The position numbers were made by a program, and so were the translations under genes. Under the pieces are notes generated by a model. That model worked only from the letters and a program-made list of their open reading frames with translations. It did not search any database and was not told the origin of the DNA. A DNA stretch of 64,000 nucleotides, taken from assembly GCA_009103225.1 (NCBI GenBank), contig RHPI01000638.1, positions 124,001 through 188,000 of the forward strand. Reading direction: 5' to 3'. Positions within the stretch are counted from its first letter, which is position 1, and every line of letters starts with the position of its first letter. Shown here piece after piece: positions 34,500 to 44,783 of this stretch. Origin of the DNA: Chlorokybus atmophyticus. Its lineage: Eukaryota; Plantae; Mesostigma and Chlorokybus algae.

Positions 34500-34650
34500 C
34501 CCCCCCCNNNNNNNNNNNNNNNNNNNNNNNNNNNNNNNNNNNNNNNNNNNNNNNNNNNNNNNNNNNNNNNNNNNNNNNNNNNNNNNNNNNNNNNNNNNNN
34601 NNNNNNNNNNNNNNNNNNNNNNNNNNNNNCCCCCCCCCCCCCCCCCCCCT
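34500..34650. other. Assembly gap (Ns 34508-34629) flanked by poly-C
   Basis: Seen directly in the sequence. Confidence 0.98.
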
Positions 34651-35711: not shown

Positions 35712-38700
35712 CTACAGCTTGCAATCCGCATATGTTCCATAAATCTCCTGCCCGAGCGCTCCCGTATTCCCGGGCCGCGAGTACACTATCTGCATCACTC
35801 CCAGCGTGCGCGTCCTGAACCCAACAGCACAATACAGAAAGTAATAATCCCAGGCTCTGATGAACTTCTCATCGAAGCCGAGCGCACGCACGCGATCGAT
35901 GTTGGAAAGGAAGGCCTCGCGCCATTTGAGCAATGTGGGAGCGTAGTGGGGACCGATGTTCTCGGCGCTCTCGATGGAGAAGGAAGAGTGTGAGGACATG
36001 GCTGAGATTAACGAAGCGAAAGAAGGCACGCAGCAACCGGGGAAGATGTACTCTTTGATGAAGTCGCTGCTCTTGCGGTAGACGTCGTAACGCTCCTCGG
36101 GGGTCGTGATCACCTGCGAGTTGTTGGGTTGGGTTGGGTTGGGCTGAGTTGGGTTGGGTTAGGTGGGTGTCGTGCGCCTCGCGAGGTGAGATGTGTGCCT
36201 GTTGTGTGTGACATGTTGTCATACATACCCACATGCGCGTGTGCGTGTGCACATACACGTGCATGTGAGCAAACAACAGCGTGAATGTGTAATATGCACA
36301 TGTACACGCACATAAATAAGACATGTATGCTTGCATGCAAACGCGTGCGCGTGCAACAGCACACCGCACATGTATAATGTGAACGTGCCTGCGTATGAAA
36401 ACGCACACGTCCATGCTGCAGACACCCACACGCACGCGCGCACACCCACCCACACACACGCATGCATGCACGCACGCACGCACAAATGGGTCTTCCCCCT
36501 CCCCACACCCACACCCACATACCTGCACCACCATGATCCCATCTGGTTTCAGCAGCCTGTCGCACTGCCCGTAAAAATCCCCAAGATACTCATGTCCCAC
36601 TGCCTCCAGCATCTCGCACGAGACGATCCGATCGAACGCGCATCCCTCGACGTCGGCCAGCGATCGGTAGTCGCACAGCTTGAAGGTGATCTTGTTGGAC
36701 AGGTTCAGAGCATCGACGCGGGACTGGGCGAGGGCCAACTGCTCCTTGGATAGAGTGATGCCTGAGGGGAGAGGAGTGTGTGTGTACAGAGGTAAGTGGT
36801 GACGGTGACATGACAATTGGGTTGGACAGAGATACATATGCACGGATACGCGCACACGCGCGTACGCATGCATGCATGTAAATGCACAGATATACGAGCA
36901 CGACACACGCCCGTATATGCGTGTGTCAACACATATATGCACGCACACGAGCGCAGACCCCCACCCACCCACCCACACAGACCAGTAGAGCAGTTACGTG
37001 ACTGTATGACTTCATTGGTGAGTTAATTTGAAACACCAACATCACCTGTGACATGGCATCCGGTGGCTTGCACCGCCATGATAGCTAAGCTCCCCCACCC
37101 AAACCCAATATCCAGCACTCTATGCTTTTCCCCAATCCTCGCTTTCTCAATCAACCCCATAATCTTCCTCGTCTGCGCGTCTTGCAGTGGCTCGCCTGGA
37201 TGTTGAAATACAGCGCACGAGTACGCCATGGTCGGATCCAAGAATAAAGAGAACAACTCGTTGCCGAGGTCGTAGTGGGCGGCGATGTTGCGACGGGCCT
37301 GAGAGAGCGTGTTGGCGCGGAGCAAGTGGCGGAAGTAGGCGGAGGCATAACCGAGGCCGGCGGTGGCTAAGGAAGCACCCGCCATCAACCAACCCACGCG
37401 CCTTGGGGGTGACAATAGAAGTTAGGCACATGTGCTTGCGCGTAGGCGCACATACACACGCAGGAACTCTTACACAATGTGCGCATACACATGTGCGCGT
37501 GCGCAAGCACCCACTCACACTGCACGCACGCACGCACGCCATGGCAACGCACACACACGCACACGCACACGCACGCCATGGCAACATGCCCGTACAGGCA
37601 CATGTTGCACTGCAGATACACACATCAGCACAGGACACGCACATGCACATTTTCTTACTTGTTGTGGGAGCCTCCGGGTTTGCGCTGGGCGTCGCGGTTG
37701 ACTATCAGCAGCTCCAGCAAGTCCATCACGGTGGCGTCGGGTCCAGCGCACTCGAAATCCGCATCAATGTACGCATCAGCAATACCAAGGTCCGCGCGTG
37801 TAGCCACCTGTTTGTGTGCATTCAACACGCAACAATTGCACTTCCGCTTGCACGCACGCACACACATACGCATGCAAGCGTGCAAGTGCGCGCTCACACA
37901 TGCACGCATGGATATACTCGCGCACGTACGCATGCAATCAATCATCCATGCACGCCAACATGCAAACACGCACGCATCACTCATGCACGCGCACGCATAC
38001 ACACGCACACACGCGTGCATGCACACGCACACGCAGCCTCACCTTCCAGTAGAAGGTCGGCGAATGCACGCGCAGCTGGCAGTGCGGCTGACATCTCCCC
38101 TTGCCCTCGCCATCTCCCTCAGGATTCCCAATCACAACCGTCGAGCCGCCCGTTTCCGCAATACTGCAAAACCGATACAACTCTTCAACACCGATATCAC
38201 ACCCGCACACGCACACACACCACAATCAACAACCACACTTACGTAATGCTCCCAATCTTGATGAACCCCCGCAGGAACGCAATCACGGCCGCCTTGGACA
38301 CGCTCTCCGTCACAGAGAGAGCGAACTGTTTCGGGTACGGCAGCAACGCAGGCTTCTCTTGCAACAACGCGCTGGCGGCGCGCACGCCAGCGACAAAACC
38401 GTCTTCATGAAAACCGTACCTGCACCGGAGATGCATCAGAGAGATGCATCAGAGAGATACGATATACGCACACGCACGTACCCCGCGTATGCGCCAGCGA
38501 AGTATGTGTGGTTTGTTCCTTGCATGCGCGTGAGGCGAGCGGCGGCGAGGGCGGCGGCGCGGCTGGGGACGGGGTGGGACGTGCGCCACTCGGATGCGAC
38601 GGAGGAGGGGGGAGGGGGAGAGGAGGGGTTGAGAGTCACGAAGAGGGGAGGGACCGTGGACGGAAGGTTCTGAGGAGGGGAGAGTGAACATAAGCGCATC

Positions 38701-40860
38701 AGTATGAGAGATGGTGTGAACCTTCGGGGGGGGGGACTACAGCAGCTGTGTAGGTGTGATGCAACGTAGTATGGTACAGTGTGTGGAACACATAGTTCAA
38801 CTTGCTTGCTTTGATGTCATGTGCTGTGATGAAGTGTGGCATAGTGTGGTGTGCTATGTAGTGTCGTGTACTTTGTAGTATAGTACTAGCATAGCGAAGG
38901 TTACCATGCTATGTTGCGTGGTGTTGTAGTTATCGTGTACTAGTAGTATAGCATTACATTGTTATACAATTCATCAATAATTCGTGTCGTGTGGTGTGTG
39001 TGTGTGTGTTGGTGTCTCGTCACTTGATTTTGCTGCTACTCACCACCGCGGTCCTGTGCTAGTGCCCTAAGTACTGATGCCACACAGAGCAATTTGGTAC
39101 AGTGCATTTGTACATCTCGACACAATGACATGCTTGCCTGCAGTCTGTTGAGCCAATACGTCACCGTCACGCCCGACTCGGCATCCCCAAGAAAGTTCCA
39201 GCTGCTCCAGCAGTTGCGCCTGTATCACAACAACAACACGACATCACTCACACTCTTTTACACCCCCACCCCCCCACCCCACACACACACACTCAAACCC
39301 ACCTCGTAGGCATGAAGGACACATCCCTGTGCAGATATATCTTACTCTCCGAGTATCCAAACGCCGACAATGTATCCCTCTCCTCCTGGTCGGCATCATC
39401 ACCGAGGATTGCGAGGGCGTCGGGTGCGTGGCAGGCGAGGATGCACTTGTCGTATGTGTGCGTGTGGGAGTTGTTGGTATCATCAACGGATACAACAGAC
39501 ACGCCCGTGGGGGTGCGTGTGACGCTCTTCACGGGTGTGGAGAGCCGGATATCTGCCCCGTGATCGCGGAGGAAAACGAGGACCTTAGACACGTAGGTGC
39601 GAGAGCGGCCAGCCACGGTCAGCCATTGAGGCCTACCGAGGATCTGTGGGAAGGGGAGTGTGTGTGCGTGTGTGCGTTCGCAAACACGCCTATGCGCGAC
39701 AATACGTACACAGGTCTGTGCGTGCGTGTGCATGTGAATGTGCACATGTGTTCGTGTGCGCAAGCGTGTGCGTGTGCTCACCTTTGTTTAGATGCACATG
39801 CATGTGGGCTTTCAACACACTTGATATCCACATGCATACCTCTGCATGTACAAATGCAAATGCGCCTATATGCTGTGTACACTCGCACACATGAACACTT
39901 GCTTGACCACACGCACACAAAGTTGTGTAATCTGTCTCAATCTTACCTGCAACATGTGGTGGTTTTTAAGGAAGGACAGTATGCTGTTTGCCGAGCACGC
40001 CAACACTGTAGCTGTGGAGCACGACCATATGGCCGCGCACACGGGGAGTAGATAGTACTCTTTGAAGTAAGCCGAGTACCCGTGCTTGTTCAAAAATCCC
40101 CCGAGCGCAATATCATCTTCGGGTGTATCATTAAGATATCTCTCAGCATCGCCCCTAAAGCGCAGCATCTCCGATATCATGCGCAGGAACGACGGGTTCA
40201 ACATGTTGGCACGCTGCGCGAAGAGAGCGTCGAGGCCATCGCTACCCCACTCTAGGAACGGAGTGTTGTTGGGTTGTTCGTCTCTGCTCCCCCTCTTCAG
40301 GCTCACGGCAAAGGACATGTCGCTGGGCTCCACAGCCACGCCGAGCGAATCGAACCACTCCAACATGTTGGGATACGTCACCTGAAAGCAGAATGTTGAC
40401 TCCATTATAGAACTTTGTACGCGCACACTGCAACCAGTGATGCAATGCAAGCATGCAGGAATGTGCGTGTTGGTGAACACTCAATGGCATAAGGATCAAC
40501 GCGCAAGCATGTCTGCAAACCATCAACCCACATTGACTCAATGGAGGGAAAACTCAATGCAGGTGTGCATGTTTGGTTATAGTTCCACAACCCAACACGT
40601 CGGTCCGCTTGTTATGGCATTGTCACATTGCATCACAGGCACGTATTCCCCCCACTCACTCTGTTGAACACCATGAAGCCGACATCGACCTCGACCCCAT
40701 CGACTTGGACGGTTCGGGCATGTCCCCCTACTTCCACGTCACGCTCGTACAGCGTCACGCTGTGGCCTGCCGCCGCCACACGCCACGCCGCGGCCAGACC
40801 GGCCACGCCGCCGCCTACCACCGCCACCCTCAGAGGGGTGGCGGGGGCGGCGGGAGCCAT
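35712..40860 (-). CDS. cfa: Plant-type cyclopropane-fatty-acyl-phospholipid synthase-like protein: N-terminal FAD amine-oxidase-family domain fused to a SAM-dependent CFA/CMAS methyltransferase, 11 exons
   Basis: VAVVGGGVAGLAAA...GGHART...DVGFMVFNRVTYPNM; WSSWNF; YWLNRLQNL; GAYAGYGFHEDG; ARRNIAAHYDLGNELFSLFLDPTMAYSCA; VLDIGFGWGSL; GITLSKEQL; DRIVSCEMLEAVGHEY; DFIKEYIFPG; HYAPTLLKWR; WDYYFLYCAVGF. All exons are phase-consistent. Confidence 0.95.
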
Positions 40861-42275
40861 GAAGGCAGAGTCTTGTCCTCCACTCCACTCCTCCACCCCT
40901 GCTGGCTCCTCGCCCACTCCTCGCCTCTCCCTCTGTCCTCCAGACAACGACAACTATGACTAGTGCAACACCGCCGCCGCCGCTGCCCACGTGCTGCAAA
41001 CAGCCTTCCGGCCTGGTGTCACGTAGCTTGAGCTCTCGAGTTCAAGTCAATGCTGTCAATGCAACATGTTAAGAGGCTTCAGCGGGGCGCGGCCGCGGGG
41101 TACACGCCGTCGTCGAAGGTACAGATGGCTCGGTACAAAGTACAAGTGTACCACAAATTGCACAGGCTGTGTACCGCAGCTTGGCGCCGCATGTTTCAAA
41201 CCGGTTCATCCATGACGACAACTCTCTCATCTTGATGTCAATCAAGCCAAGTATAGGACTACCCAGCTTAGCTGAATGGACGGTTGGACCTCATGAGTTA
41301 TGAGTCGTAGTCTCGGCGTTGAACCGGCTCGACAGATGCGGACTGAGCGATGCAAGCGGTACCAAACTGAACTGTACTTTTTGACCCTCGTCTAACGTTA
41401 GGGCGCTGTTGCGTGCACTTAGCGGCGGCGGCAGTGGTGGCGGAGGGGGCGGCATTGCTGTCGTCGTCGTCGTGGTAGTTGTTGAGGACGCCATTGGTGT
41501 TCGCCTGCATGATAGAAGGAGAAAGTCATGCCCGTCGTTGTGGTGTGAGTTGAGCTGTGGTCAATGTTTCGGGAGCTGTTCTTCCTGCATTTGTGGGAGG
41601 AGGAGAGCGAAGCGTTGGGCGGCGGCGGCGGCAGCAGCGGCGACGCCGGCGGCGGCAGCGGCGGTGGAGGCGATATGAAAGGTGGACGCGTGGCATTGTC
41701 TCATGAAAGATCCACCGTCGACTCCTCTTCTGTCGTCCCGCTGCCTTTATCTGAGGTGATCGGCGTGGCCGGGCCGGGCCACACCACCCCCGACCCCGCC
41801 GCTGCCCATGTGGTCGACAATGCAGGCAACCCTCGAGCCAATTTGAACAAGGCTGCATTGGCGAATGCAACAGAAACTAGGAACATAAAGGATATCCGTT
41901 GCCTGCCGCTGAGAACTCTGCTCAGAGACATCAATTTTCAGGTTCGCCATTGCAAGTTTGACTGCGCTACTGTTGACTTCAGTTGCTTAGAGTTACTATC
42001 ACAGAAGTTGCTAGGAGACAATGATGACAACTTCAGTACAAAGCTGTTGACACAAACAACCTCACATGCAATAGGACACTTTGTGACAACAAAGTGGCAT
42101 GGCACTTGTCTTCGGGATTATAACGCACGCATGTTTTTTGCCATGTGCGCCGCAACAACCAACCCAATGGCTGATGTAGGTATAGATTTCTGTCTCGTGA
42201 GAGTGTTTCAAGTACTCATTGATTGTGTAGTCCAACCTGCCTATAAGGTATAGGATATATACCAACCACAAGTGC

Positions 42276-44295
42276 ATGCCGGGGGTAGTCTATGCAGCAC
42301 CACCTACTACACATCATGATGTGCATGTCATTGGCGTAAATACGCAACTGCCATGCATCATGCCGCATGAAGTGACAGTCCTGACAATGACAACTATCCC
42401 ACATAACAGGTATACTGTCTGATGCACGTGGCGGCGCTGTTGACTCCCTTCTTGTGGCGCCCAACCTTGCCCCGCGCCGCACTCCTCCTCATCACATACA
42501 ACCTACGCATGTTCGGCATCACCGGCGGATACCACCGCCTCCTCGCACACAAGTAAGATACCGATAGCAAGAGTTGCGTCGCACGGGTGTCAACATGCAC
42601 ATGCATGCGTGTTGAGGAAGCGGCACACGCACACACACACACGTACTCATGCACACATGCACACTAATTGTCTCGCTCCCATAGGTCGTACGAAACGTCT
42701 CGCGCGTTTGGTTTCTTTCTGGCTTGGCTGGGCGCCAGCGCGATGCAGAAGGGTCCGTTATGGTGGTGCTCTCACCACCGCCACCACCACCGCAACGCCG
42801 ACAACGAGCGCGATGCCCACTCGCCGATGCACACGGGGTTCTTCTGGTCACACATGGGATGGTACGCAACACCACATCAAGGGACACATCAACGAACACA
42901 TCAACACATCAAACACGCACGCACGCGCGGTATCTGCGCATGTGGTACACGCGTCACTCGCATGCATTTGACACGCATCACTCGCACGTGCTGTATCTGT
43001 GCACACATACCTGGTACCAACGCCACTGATACAACTTCGCCACTGATACAATTTCCTTCACACGCACGCGCGCATACACACCCAACACTCCCCCCCCCAG
43101 GTTCCTCTGCACCCCCGCCCACGTTGAGCCTCTCTGGTCGTCCGTCCCCGACCTCCTCCTCCGTTCCGAGCTGTTGTGGCTGGAGCGCTGCCACTTCGTC
43201 CCTCCGCTGGCGCTGGCGCTGGCGCTGTGGGGCGCGGGAGGGGGAGCCGCGCTCGCGTGGGGGTTCGCGCTAGCCACAGTCGTGTGCTGGCATGCGACGT
43301 ACTGCATCAATTCGGTGGCGCATGTCGTAGGAACGAGAAGGTGGGCGGGACGGGGATTGACAAGCCCTTTTATGTGTGTGCGTGCGTGCGCGCGTTGTGC
43401 GTTGTACGCTCAAGAGCATGTGTATTGCGACAATGTGCACATAGGCGTTTGCACACACATGCGTTTGTGCTTGTTTGTGTGCGCGTGTTTATGGGGATGC
43501 ACTTGTGTTACTGTAGAGCAGTGCGCATGTGCATGCGTAACATGTGTGCGCGTGCGTGCACACAATGACTTATTTATAATATGCGTTGTCGTCGCAGGTA
43601 TCGATGCGAGTTTTCGGGTGGTTGTGATGCGCGCAATAACGGGCTGCTGGCCGTCATCACACTGGGGGAGGGTTGGCACAACAACCACCATGTGAGTGGC
43701 AGATCACCGCAACACATGTGGCGCACGGATAGCACACACACACACACGCAAGTGCACGCACATGCACACGCGCACTTGCACGCTGAGTCAACCTCACCAC
43801 CGCAGTGCTACATGCGCTCCGCCCGCCATGGGTTCTACTTTTGGGAGTTTGACGCGACATACTGCGTGCTGCGTGCTCTCGCCCTCGCAGGGCTCGTGTG
43901 GGACCTTCACCTACCCCCAATGGAGCAGGTGAGCAGAGCTGCAAAGCGCACAACAATCTCAACACGTCGTTGTTGCGTGTGTTAGAGGTGTCATATGACA
44001 TTGTCTTAACAGTACCCCTACACAATCATGACAGGTTTTAGGTTCAACAGCAAACTTCATCACCTCAGCTTACAGTCTCTCTGTATCACCAAGTTTTGCC
44101 AATGTTGTGACCAAATGCTTGAGAAATGTTGTACCAATTGTGTAACCAAAAACGCCCATGCCACCTTTCCCTTTACAGTTGGAGGAGAGGAGGGAGGGTC
44201 CGGACCAGTATATATGCCGATGCCACGAGCAGGACTCATTGACGGAACGCATTGTTCACCGCAAAAAGTGTGAAGCCAACAGCAAGGTCTGTTAG
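42276..44295 (+). CDS. Bacterial-type delta-9-like acyl-lipid/acyl-CoA membrane desaturase (first exon tentative)
   Basis: His boxes: [32 protein letters not shown]...[12 protein letters not shown]. Also [24 protein letters not shown] and WEFDATY. Exons 42410-42552, 42685-42861, 43101-43340, 43598-43691, 43806-43928 and 44179-44295 are phase-consistent. Confidence 0.92.
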
Positions 44296-44783
44296 AGAAG
44301 GTCTGGTTATAGGGATCGGTTGGTTGGATTGTTCAACGATTCTATTTATTCGATTATTTGATAGCAGCGGTGCAGCCGCCACATAGCCTACGGCCCCTGA
44401 TATTGTACAGGTGTAGTAAACAGAAGTGCGATTCGTGTTGCCCCATTCGGCAACTTAACTCATGTGTAGCCGTTGATGTCTCTCTAAATGTGTAAAAGAG
44501 GTAAGCCAGTAACGTGTTGATGTTGTGCATTGCGCTTGCGATTGTTAATGATTACCCCATTCATAGTGTACAAGAGATGCAACTGGGACTTCTTGCACGC
44601 AAGACATTACACCATAGTGCCAACTTGTCACCACTGTGCTTGTGGGAAAATGTTGCCTTAGTTGTGGGCAGTTTGGAATGTGTTGGACTTGCAGAATAGC
44701 CCTTCGCTGGAACACATGGCATAATAACAGCACCTTCATCGCAGTAAATAGTGTTGAAATATGCAGACAACGCCATGTTGTCA

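Follow-up and report, generated by a model that had tools for sequence, protein, structure and literature searches.

Why does a gene for a membrane acyl desaturase stand head to head with a gene for a fused oxidase-methyltransferase in the streptophyte alga Chlorokybus atmophyticus, and do the two genes serve one pathway? The question is raised by positions 35,712 to 44,295 of a 64,000-nucleotide stretch of its genome (GenBank assembly GCA_009103225.1, contig RHPI01000638.1, positions 124,001 to 188,000 of the forward strand), which is the window to which all coordinates below refer. On balance, it is probable that the pair represents a conserved cluster of two divergently transcribed lipid-modification genes in streptophyte algae. 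This answer is built on the observed gene structures, their expression, the occurrence of the pair in two distant algae and the linkage of the same families in a bacterial operon, from which we infer the coupling of substrate and product, the co-regulation of the two genes and the identity of the product. The synthesis of furan fatty acids in eukaryotes is an unsolved problem, for which candidate plant genes were put forward in 2024, and what the oxidase domain does in plant cyclopropane synthases has been a standing question since 2002. A desaturase tied to these enzymes by an operon in bacteria and by a divergent pair in algae would thus offer a concrete third gene that points to the true substrate monoene, and with it a testable extra step of a furan or cyclopropane fatty-acid pathway.

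The models of both genes are hand-built and splice-consistent, and together with Pfam searches they bear out the claim of an earlier note, made from the sequence, that three activities are distributed over two divergent genes. The stop codons of the two genes lie at 35712 and 44295, the limits given in that note. The gene on the minus strand, in which a cyclopropane-fatty-acid (CFA) synthase-type methyltransferase follows a domain binding flavin adenine dinucleotide (FAD), is organized as follows.

35712..40860, minus strand: fusion gene, orthologue of UFAMD and plant-type cyclopropane synthase (CPS); 11 exons, 896 residues, no internal stop
40860-40660, 40381-39947, 39643-39303, 39219-39138 (GC donor), 38669-38482, 38419-38243, minus strand: fusion exons 1-6
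38163-38043, 37807-37659, 37401-37046, 36761-36523, 36113-35712, minus strand: fusion exons 7-11
38243..40860, minus strand: exons 1-6, FAD-binding amine-oxidase-like (UfaD-like) domain, residues 1 to about 474, with the GxGxxG motif VVGGGVAGLAAA
35712..38163, minus strand: exons 7-11, CFA-synthase-type methyltransferase with its N-terminal subdomain (CMAS1/UfaM-like), with the S-adenosylmethionine (SAM) motif VLDIGFGWG

In single-exon Pfam searches, the N-terminal exons of the fusion match NAD_binding_8 (6.6e-15) and Amino_oxidase (7.9e-13 and 2.8e-5), and three C-terminal exons match CMAS (1.6e-27, 1.6e-17 and 2.1e-22). Residues 10-894 are collinear with the proteins of the fern Pteridium (P0131) and of Mesotaenium (P0124), which comprise 866-868 residues and share 52-53% identity with the fusion from end to end. 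Judged by these likenesses, the oxidase-CMAS fusion is the already known plant type (cyclopropane synthase/AtUFAMD1), as the earlier note had stated. A word search with the Mesotaenium protein as the query identified orthologues in Marchantia, mosses, Selaginella, ferns, seed plants including Arabidopsis, and Closterium, and related fusions exist in Corallochytrium, one amoebozoan and one stramenopile. Additionally, when fusion exon 2 was compared with 1.84 billion representatives by HMMER, many proteins of 860-920 residues were among the matches; proteins of 999-1273 residues from the same search were considered as triple fusions with DUF1365, and none of them carries DUF1365. In comparisons with bacterial proteins (tblastn), the UfaD-like domain shares 36-42% identity with the UfaD-like protein of the Methylophilaceae locus L078, and the CMAS domain shares 43-48% identity with the operon CMAS adjoining DUF1365, versus 27% with a second, shorter CMAS. 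Intron 4 of the fusion has a GC-AG boundary (CTGCAG/gcaagc at 39138-39139, minus strand), placed on the basis of collinearity with homologues.

The gene on the plus strand encodes a predicted di-iron desaturase with the following features.

41564..44295, plus strand: delta-9-type membrane acyl desaturase gene; 7 exons, 423 residues, JGI Chlat1 Chrsp175S02357
41564-41941, 42410-42552, 42685-42861, 43101-43340, 43598-43691, 43806-43928, 44179-44295, plus strand: desaturase exons 1-7
42533..42550, plus strand: histidine box 1, HRLLAH, from the translation; H168, R169 and H173 invariant in alignment A2
42773..42790, plus strand: histidine box 2, HHRHHH, from the translation; H205, R206, H208 and H209 invariant in A2
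43677..43691, plus strand: histidine box 3, HNNHH within GEGWHNNHH, from the translation; H340, N341, N342, H343 and H344 invariant in A2

FA_desaturase was matched on this strand in the single-exon Pfam searches, and a six-exon hand model (42410-44295) is 100% identical to residues 127-423 of Chrsp175S02357 (P0408), from which exon 1 was taken. All eight conserved histidines of the three boxes are present. The protein shares 63% identity with Spirogloea P0002 and about 50% with bacterial acyl-CoA desaturases, and its orthologues were found in Mesostigma, Klebsormidium, Chara, Spirogloea, two Closterium species and the red algae Porphyridium and Galdieria. It resembles SCD, DesC and ADS/FAD5 (PF00487) in size, hydrophobic segments and histidine boxes (HxxxxH, HxxHH and HxxHH with GEGWHNNHH). 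Unlike these enzymes, the algal clade, which unites streptophyte and red algae, has a CEF..CDARNN insert and a C-terminal CRC motif, and three streptophyte sequences begin with MFRE(L/I)xFL. Among the best 120 matches of the Spirogloea orthologue, there are no proteins of land plants (including ADS) or cyanobacteria (including DesC); the desaturase therefore does not look like an ordinary ADS or DesC enzyme, from which it is set apart by these matches rather than by a tree. The earlier note had named a grouping with such enzymes as one of the results that would speak against its proposal, and the matches point the other way. In alignment A2, the N-terminal start is common to P0408, P0406 and P0405 (Chlorokybus, Chara and one transcript), and the CRC motif is common to the streptophyte desaturases. 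In Chlorokybus, this start is followed by a stretch rich in glycine and acidic residues, which does not have the look of a transit peptide. An NCBIfam scan of the desaturases and the operon proteins described below gave generic matches far below the cutoff and no subfamily name.

The two genes share a short spacer, which was previously put at about 1.4 kb and is in fact shorter.

40861..41563, no strand: intergenic spacer from start codon to start codon, 703 bp; candidate bidirectional promoter

The fusion mRNA contig reaches 40924 and the desaturase contig begins at or before 41419, which reduces the untranscribed spacer to 495 bp or less. Contigs assembled from two public RNA runs (X1 and X2, from two studies) and aligned to 39900-44300 demonstrate that both genes are transcribed and spliced as modelled: intron 1 of the fusion and the six introns of the desaturase are precisely missing from them. 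A spliced contig of 2713 nt in run X2 represents a near full-length fusion mRNA, whose joint at 40377/40656 supports intron 1, and a contig of 1638 nt represents the desaturase mRNA. The region is eukaryotic in character, and CA/TG-type repeats are abundant in its introns.

The same arrangement was found in a second, distant alga. In Klebsormidium nitens (locus L084), an 871-residue Amino_oxidase and CMAS gene on the minus strand lies 1.1 kb from the desaturase gene P0404 on the plus strand, again head to head, and a tblastx comparison of the Chlorokybus and Klebsormidium loci matched only the fusion and the desaturase, with no other neighbour in common. Chlorokybus and Klebsormidium stand on either side of the deepest split of the streptophytes in the established phylogeny, and the presence of the pair in both most simply dates it to their common ancestor. 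It would represent a rare two-gene metabolic cluster kept across that split, mirroring a bacterial operon apparently by convergence. It resembles other eukaryotic metabolic clusters and bidirectional gene pairs in uniting candidate consecutive steps, in a spacer of 0.7 kb or less, and in being kept across very distant lineages, and differs from them in comprising two genes only and in mirroring a bacterial operon of which it is seemingly not a descendant.

Genes of this pathway also cluster in other eukaryotes. On two eukaryotic metagenome contigs (L089:10001-15275 and L090:10001-15162), a gene for a 985-residue oxidase-CMAS fusion adjoins a convergent DUF1365 gene about 1 kb downstream, which indicates that pathway genes do cluster in eukaryotes; other neighbours on these contigs include Sec6, an RFC subunit and an RNA polymerase subunit. 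Two further candidates for the algal pair were rejected. On a compact eukaryotic contig of 70% GC (L087:10001-14898), a gene for an 857-residue fusion lies about 1 kb from one for a 419-residue desaturase, with one small called gene between them, and this desaturase is of the front-end type (HCANHG, HHQVSHH, QVEHH) and not of the delta-9 family. On a short contig (L094), a homologue of the desaturase adjoins a Methyltransf_16 gene, and no fusion is present.

The bacterial counterpart had been described in the earlier note as an operon of a desaturase, an FAD amine oxidase, DUF1365 and a Cfa-like methylase, and this description proved accurate. The fusion model and the proteins of one operon served as queries against 80 bacterial loci, which had been fetched with an alignment of the closest desaturases. 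Twelve of these loci have the amine oxidase, DUF1365 and CMAS genes immediately after the desaturase and in the same orientation. Linked loci amount to 15 once cut and variant forms are added (L066 is cut after the oxidase, L047 shows cluster genes on the upstream side of the desaturase only, and in L065 CMAS comes directly after it), and the remaining 65 are unlinked. The linked loci belong to Acinetobacter, Pseudoxanthomonas, Methylophaga, Methylococcaceae, Steroidobacteraceae, Planctomycetota and Gemmatimonadales, and the desaturase is often accompanied nearby by a second CMAS, DUF1295, DUF2878, DUF6134 and a lipocalin. For example, the Methylophilaceae locus (L078:6242-15090), every gene of which was confirmed with Pfam, comprises a second short CMAS, DUF2878, DUF1295, DUF6134 and lipocalin genes, continuing with the desaturase, amine oxidase, DUF1365, CMAS and Methyltransf_30. 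The bacterial cluster is thus larger than the published ufa genes, and its gene order differs between taxa. The two bacterial desaturases closest by identity, P0090 and P0100, come from loci without ufa-like neighbours. When approached from the oxidase side, two bacterial oxidases near the eukaryotic domain led to one operon with the desaturase (L093) and one without it (L091). The latter (L091:6586-14833) contains amine oxidase, DUF1365, CMAS, Chalcone_3, MFS, DUF3833, SDR and SnoaL genes, with SOUL-domain and TetR genes upstream of them on the opposite strand; SOUL proteins are induced by singlet oxygen in Chlamydomonas (PMC4067076).

In the published bacterial route, vaccenate is converted to a furan acid by UfaM, UfaD and UfaO in turn, starting at a cis-monoene on a phospholipid (PMC7380195). 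The enzyme families are those of UfaM, UfaD and UfaO of Cereibacter sphaeroides and Rhodopseudomonas palustris, namely a CMAS methylase, an FAD amine-oxidase-like desaturase and DUF1365, which form one operon in the bacterial loci fetched here; in algae the UfaD and methylase parts make up a single protein, and the locus lacks DUF1365. The published pathway includes no membrane di-iron desaturase, because its vaccenate comes from the anaerobic pathway, whereas a delta-9-type desaturase is the added first gene of many of the operons described here and the divergent partner in algae. In the literature searched, no mention was found of a membrane desaturase as a member of this operon, and the desaturase-led bacterial operon, the Klebsormidium pair and the adjacency of the fusion to DUF1365 in eukaryotes are new relative to that literature. 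Within the 64-kb window, tblastn searches with the bacterial L078 proteins, which are of limited sensitivity, gave no match to DUF1365, DUF1295, DUF2878 or lipocalin, in agreement with the earlier note as regards DUF1365. DUF1365 genes are unlinked in Arabidopsis and Chlamydomonas (PMC10940516, PMC4067076).

Whether the algal pair descends from this operon was addressed by phylogeny. In a careful maximum-likelihood (ML) tree of 92 desaturases, including 80 bacterial sequences, the algal and red-algal desaturases form one clade (support 100/97) that excludes all 80 bacterial sequences. The 15 linked bacterial desaturases all fall within one clade of 25 members, which points to a long-lasting coupling and not to chance. 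The algal clade attaches only weakly to unlinked bacterial lineages; backbone support is low in general (41-68), which leaves the position of the algae on the bacterial backbone insecure. In an approximately unbiased (AU) test, joining the algae to the linked clade was not rejected (p 0.83), nor does the test show the two to be sisters, and the constrained tree scored above the quick free search. An insertion of 13 residues (approximately xLxxxxPxLGTNG, before a conserved WG, near residue 191 of the L078 enzyme) characterizes the linked clade, where 22 of the 25 desaturases have it, and is absent from all algal and red-algal desaturases in the 92-sequence alignment. The suggestion that the algal enzyme is of the operon subtype was therefore abandoned, the insertion speaking against membership of the linked clade and the ML trees and AU test leaving the backbone weak. 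The insertion is also missing in the Gemmatimonadales sequences L027 and L066, although L066 is linked, and a Chitinophaga desaturase carries an unrelated insertion at the same position.

The oxidase domains present a similar picture. The eukaryotic fusions form one clade (Shimodaira-Hasegawa-like approximate likelihood ratio test, SH-aLRT, 96) and the 12 desaturase-linked bacterial copies form another, and the eukaryotic domains are nearer (SH-aLRT 88) to a set of bacterial copies among which is that of the desaturase-free L091 operon. An explanation in which the pair is a retained piece of the operon, brought by one horizontal transfer into an early eukaryote or streptophyte and followed by fusion of ufaD and ufaM, loss of ufaO and an inversion, was demoted on this evidence and is now considered quite improbable. 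It gains from the existence of an operon of exactly such content, with the desaturase directly upstream of the oxidase, and from the outcome of the AU test and the score of the constrained tree. It has to contend, however, with the careful tree, the missing insertion and the grouping of the eukaryotic oxidases with L091-type copies apart from the linked UfaD proteins, as well as with the presence of the fusion in many eukaryote supergroups where no adjoining desaturase is known and with the divergent orientation in algae versus the co-directional one in bacteria. The absence of the insertion and the placement of the oxidases favour independent assembly over retention; most likely the algal pairing came about separately from the bacterial operon, with modest support from the sequences and limited sampling. 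Of the two histories offered in the earlier note, a retained or a re-assembled pathway, it is accordingly the second that fits better; the phylogeny that it proposed places the desaturase in a eukaryote-only clade and the oxidase nearer to the desaturase-free type of operon.

A number of observations weigh against a functional two-gene cluster in algae. The synteny survey, successful in Klebsormidium, found the pair unlinked in two Closterium species, the fusion CLOP_g15100 and the desaturase CLOP_g12651 of Closterium sp. NIES-67 lying on separate contigs, and unlinked in Porphyridium. Land plants hold the fusion and are not represented among the best 120 desaturase matches, which implies that the fusion can work without the desaturase. 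The RNA evidence consists of assembled contigs, from which presence and splicing can be read, not level, condition or co-regulation. The spacers of Chlorokybus and Klebsormidium have no more 8-12-base k-mers in common than chance would give, and a shared promoter motif was dropped as a candidate for this reason. The weakly supported backbone of the desaturase tree and the insertion missing in algae count on the same side. Finally, the fusions of Sterculia and cotton make cyclopropane acids and not furans (PMC3132707), so that the product of the algal pair may be of either kind.

Part of this evidence would also fit a different explanation, regarded as rather unlikely, in which the adjacency is kept by a compact bidirectional promoter that is hard to break, and the desaturase is a housekeeping delta-9 enzyme that acts on palmitoyl or stearoyl chains for bulk membrane lipids. 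Such an enzyme would be expected without a nearby fusion, as in Closterium, Porphyridium, the L094 contig and 65 of the 80 bacterial loci, and could be absent from the best matches in land plants that hold the fusion; the position of the algal enzyme outside the operon-linked clade and its lack of the insertion are in keeping with this. It is less easily reconciled with the independent coupling of the same family to the same partners in a coherent bacterial clade, with the survival of the pair since the split of Chlorokybus and Klebsormidium while all other neighbours changed, and with the clustering of the fusion with DUF1365 in other eukaryotes. The operon, the long-kept divergent pair and the eukaryotic clustering with DUF1365 together tip the balance toward a functional link between the two genes.

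The nature of the product is a separate matter. AtUFAMD1 and the CPS proteins of Sterculia and cotton share with the algal fusion an N-terminal FAD amine-oxidase-like domain, a C-terminal CMAS domain and a length of about 865-900 residues, and the family is found in all land plants listed; the best 120 matches include no orthologue of the neighbouring desaturase from these plants, and no conserved desaturase partner of plant CPS/UFAMD has been reported in the literature searched. It is thus conceivable, if unlikely, that the algal product is a cyclopropane or cyclopropene acid and not a furan, the CMAS domain making dihydrosterculate-like acids from oleate as in Sterculia and cotton, and the desaturase either supplying oleate or palmitoleate or desaturating the cyclopropane ring to cyclopropene. 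Cyclopropane synthesis is the sole biochemically proven plant activity of this architecture, for which the oxidase domain is dispensable but helpful (PMC3132707), and the algal protein has the same domain order and length. On the other hand, Arabidopsis showed no cyclopropane acids despite holding the fusion (PMC3132707), the bacterial operon also holds DUF1365 (UfaO), the furan-forming step (PMC7380195), and the product is not readable from the sequence. The relation of the plant fusion and DUF1365 to UfaM, UfaD and UfaO was published in 2024, when these proteins were proposed as candidates (PMC10940516): AT3G23510 was named AtUFAMD1 as the homologue of UfaM and UfaD (PMC10940516; review PMC13247531), and the DUF1365 protein AT1G30130 was named AtUFAO1, the two proteins co-localising on lipid droplets (PMC10940516). 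Singlet oxygen induces CFA1, CFA2 and a DUF1365 gene together in Chlamydomonas, by way of SAK1 (PMC4067076).

For the conserved two-gene cluster favoured above, the simplest mechanism would be one in which the delta-9-family di-iron desaturase supplies a cis-monoene for the methyltransferase within the same membrane lipid pool; a role in the further desaturation of the modified chain is less likely. The CMAS domain of the fusion would then add a SAM-dependent methyl or methylene carbon to the cis-monoenoic acyl chain, and the UfaD-like FAD domain may act like bacterial UfaD, which adds a second double bond to the chain. Closure of the ring, should the pathway end in a furan fatty acid, would fall to a DUF1365 (UfaO-like) protein from another locus; without this step, methyl-branched or cyclopropane acids would be the products. 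The short common spacer would allow both genes to be switched on together.

A more far-reaching proposal can be put forward tentatively, as a possibility and not as the expected outcome. The delta-9-family desaturase may be an unrecognised fourth enzyme of the methylated and furan fatty-acid pathway, making the dedicated cis-monoene (e.g., delta-11) from which the pathway sets out, and recruited on two occasions, as the first gene of the ufaD-ufaO-ufaM operon in a bacterial clade and as the divergent partner of the fusion in the streptophyte ancestor, where a shared promoter would hold the pair together. The pair would then predate the split of Chlorokybus and Klebsormidium and would have been lost on the way to land plants.

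Several minor features of the locus were also recorded. A run of N, read as X in the translated open reading frames, marks an assembly gap at about 34500-34650, approximately 1 kb downstream of the fusion stop codon. Some contigs in both RNA runs depart from the window sequence at 40857 and at 43690, and their continuing letters were not found in the 64-kb window; these ends may reflect alternative exons, first or last, that lie beyond the window, or else a paralogue or artefacts of the assembly graph. The first departure coincides with the start codon of the fusion, where the contigs read in frame as ...LTARCVLEKN before APAAP, and the second with the end of the desaturase exon at 43598-43691.

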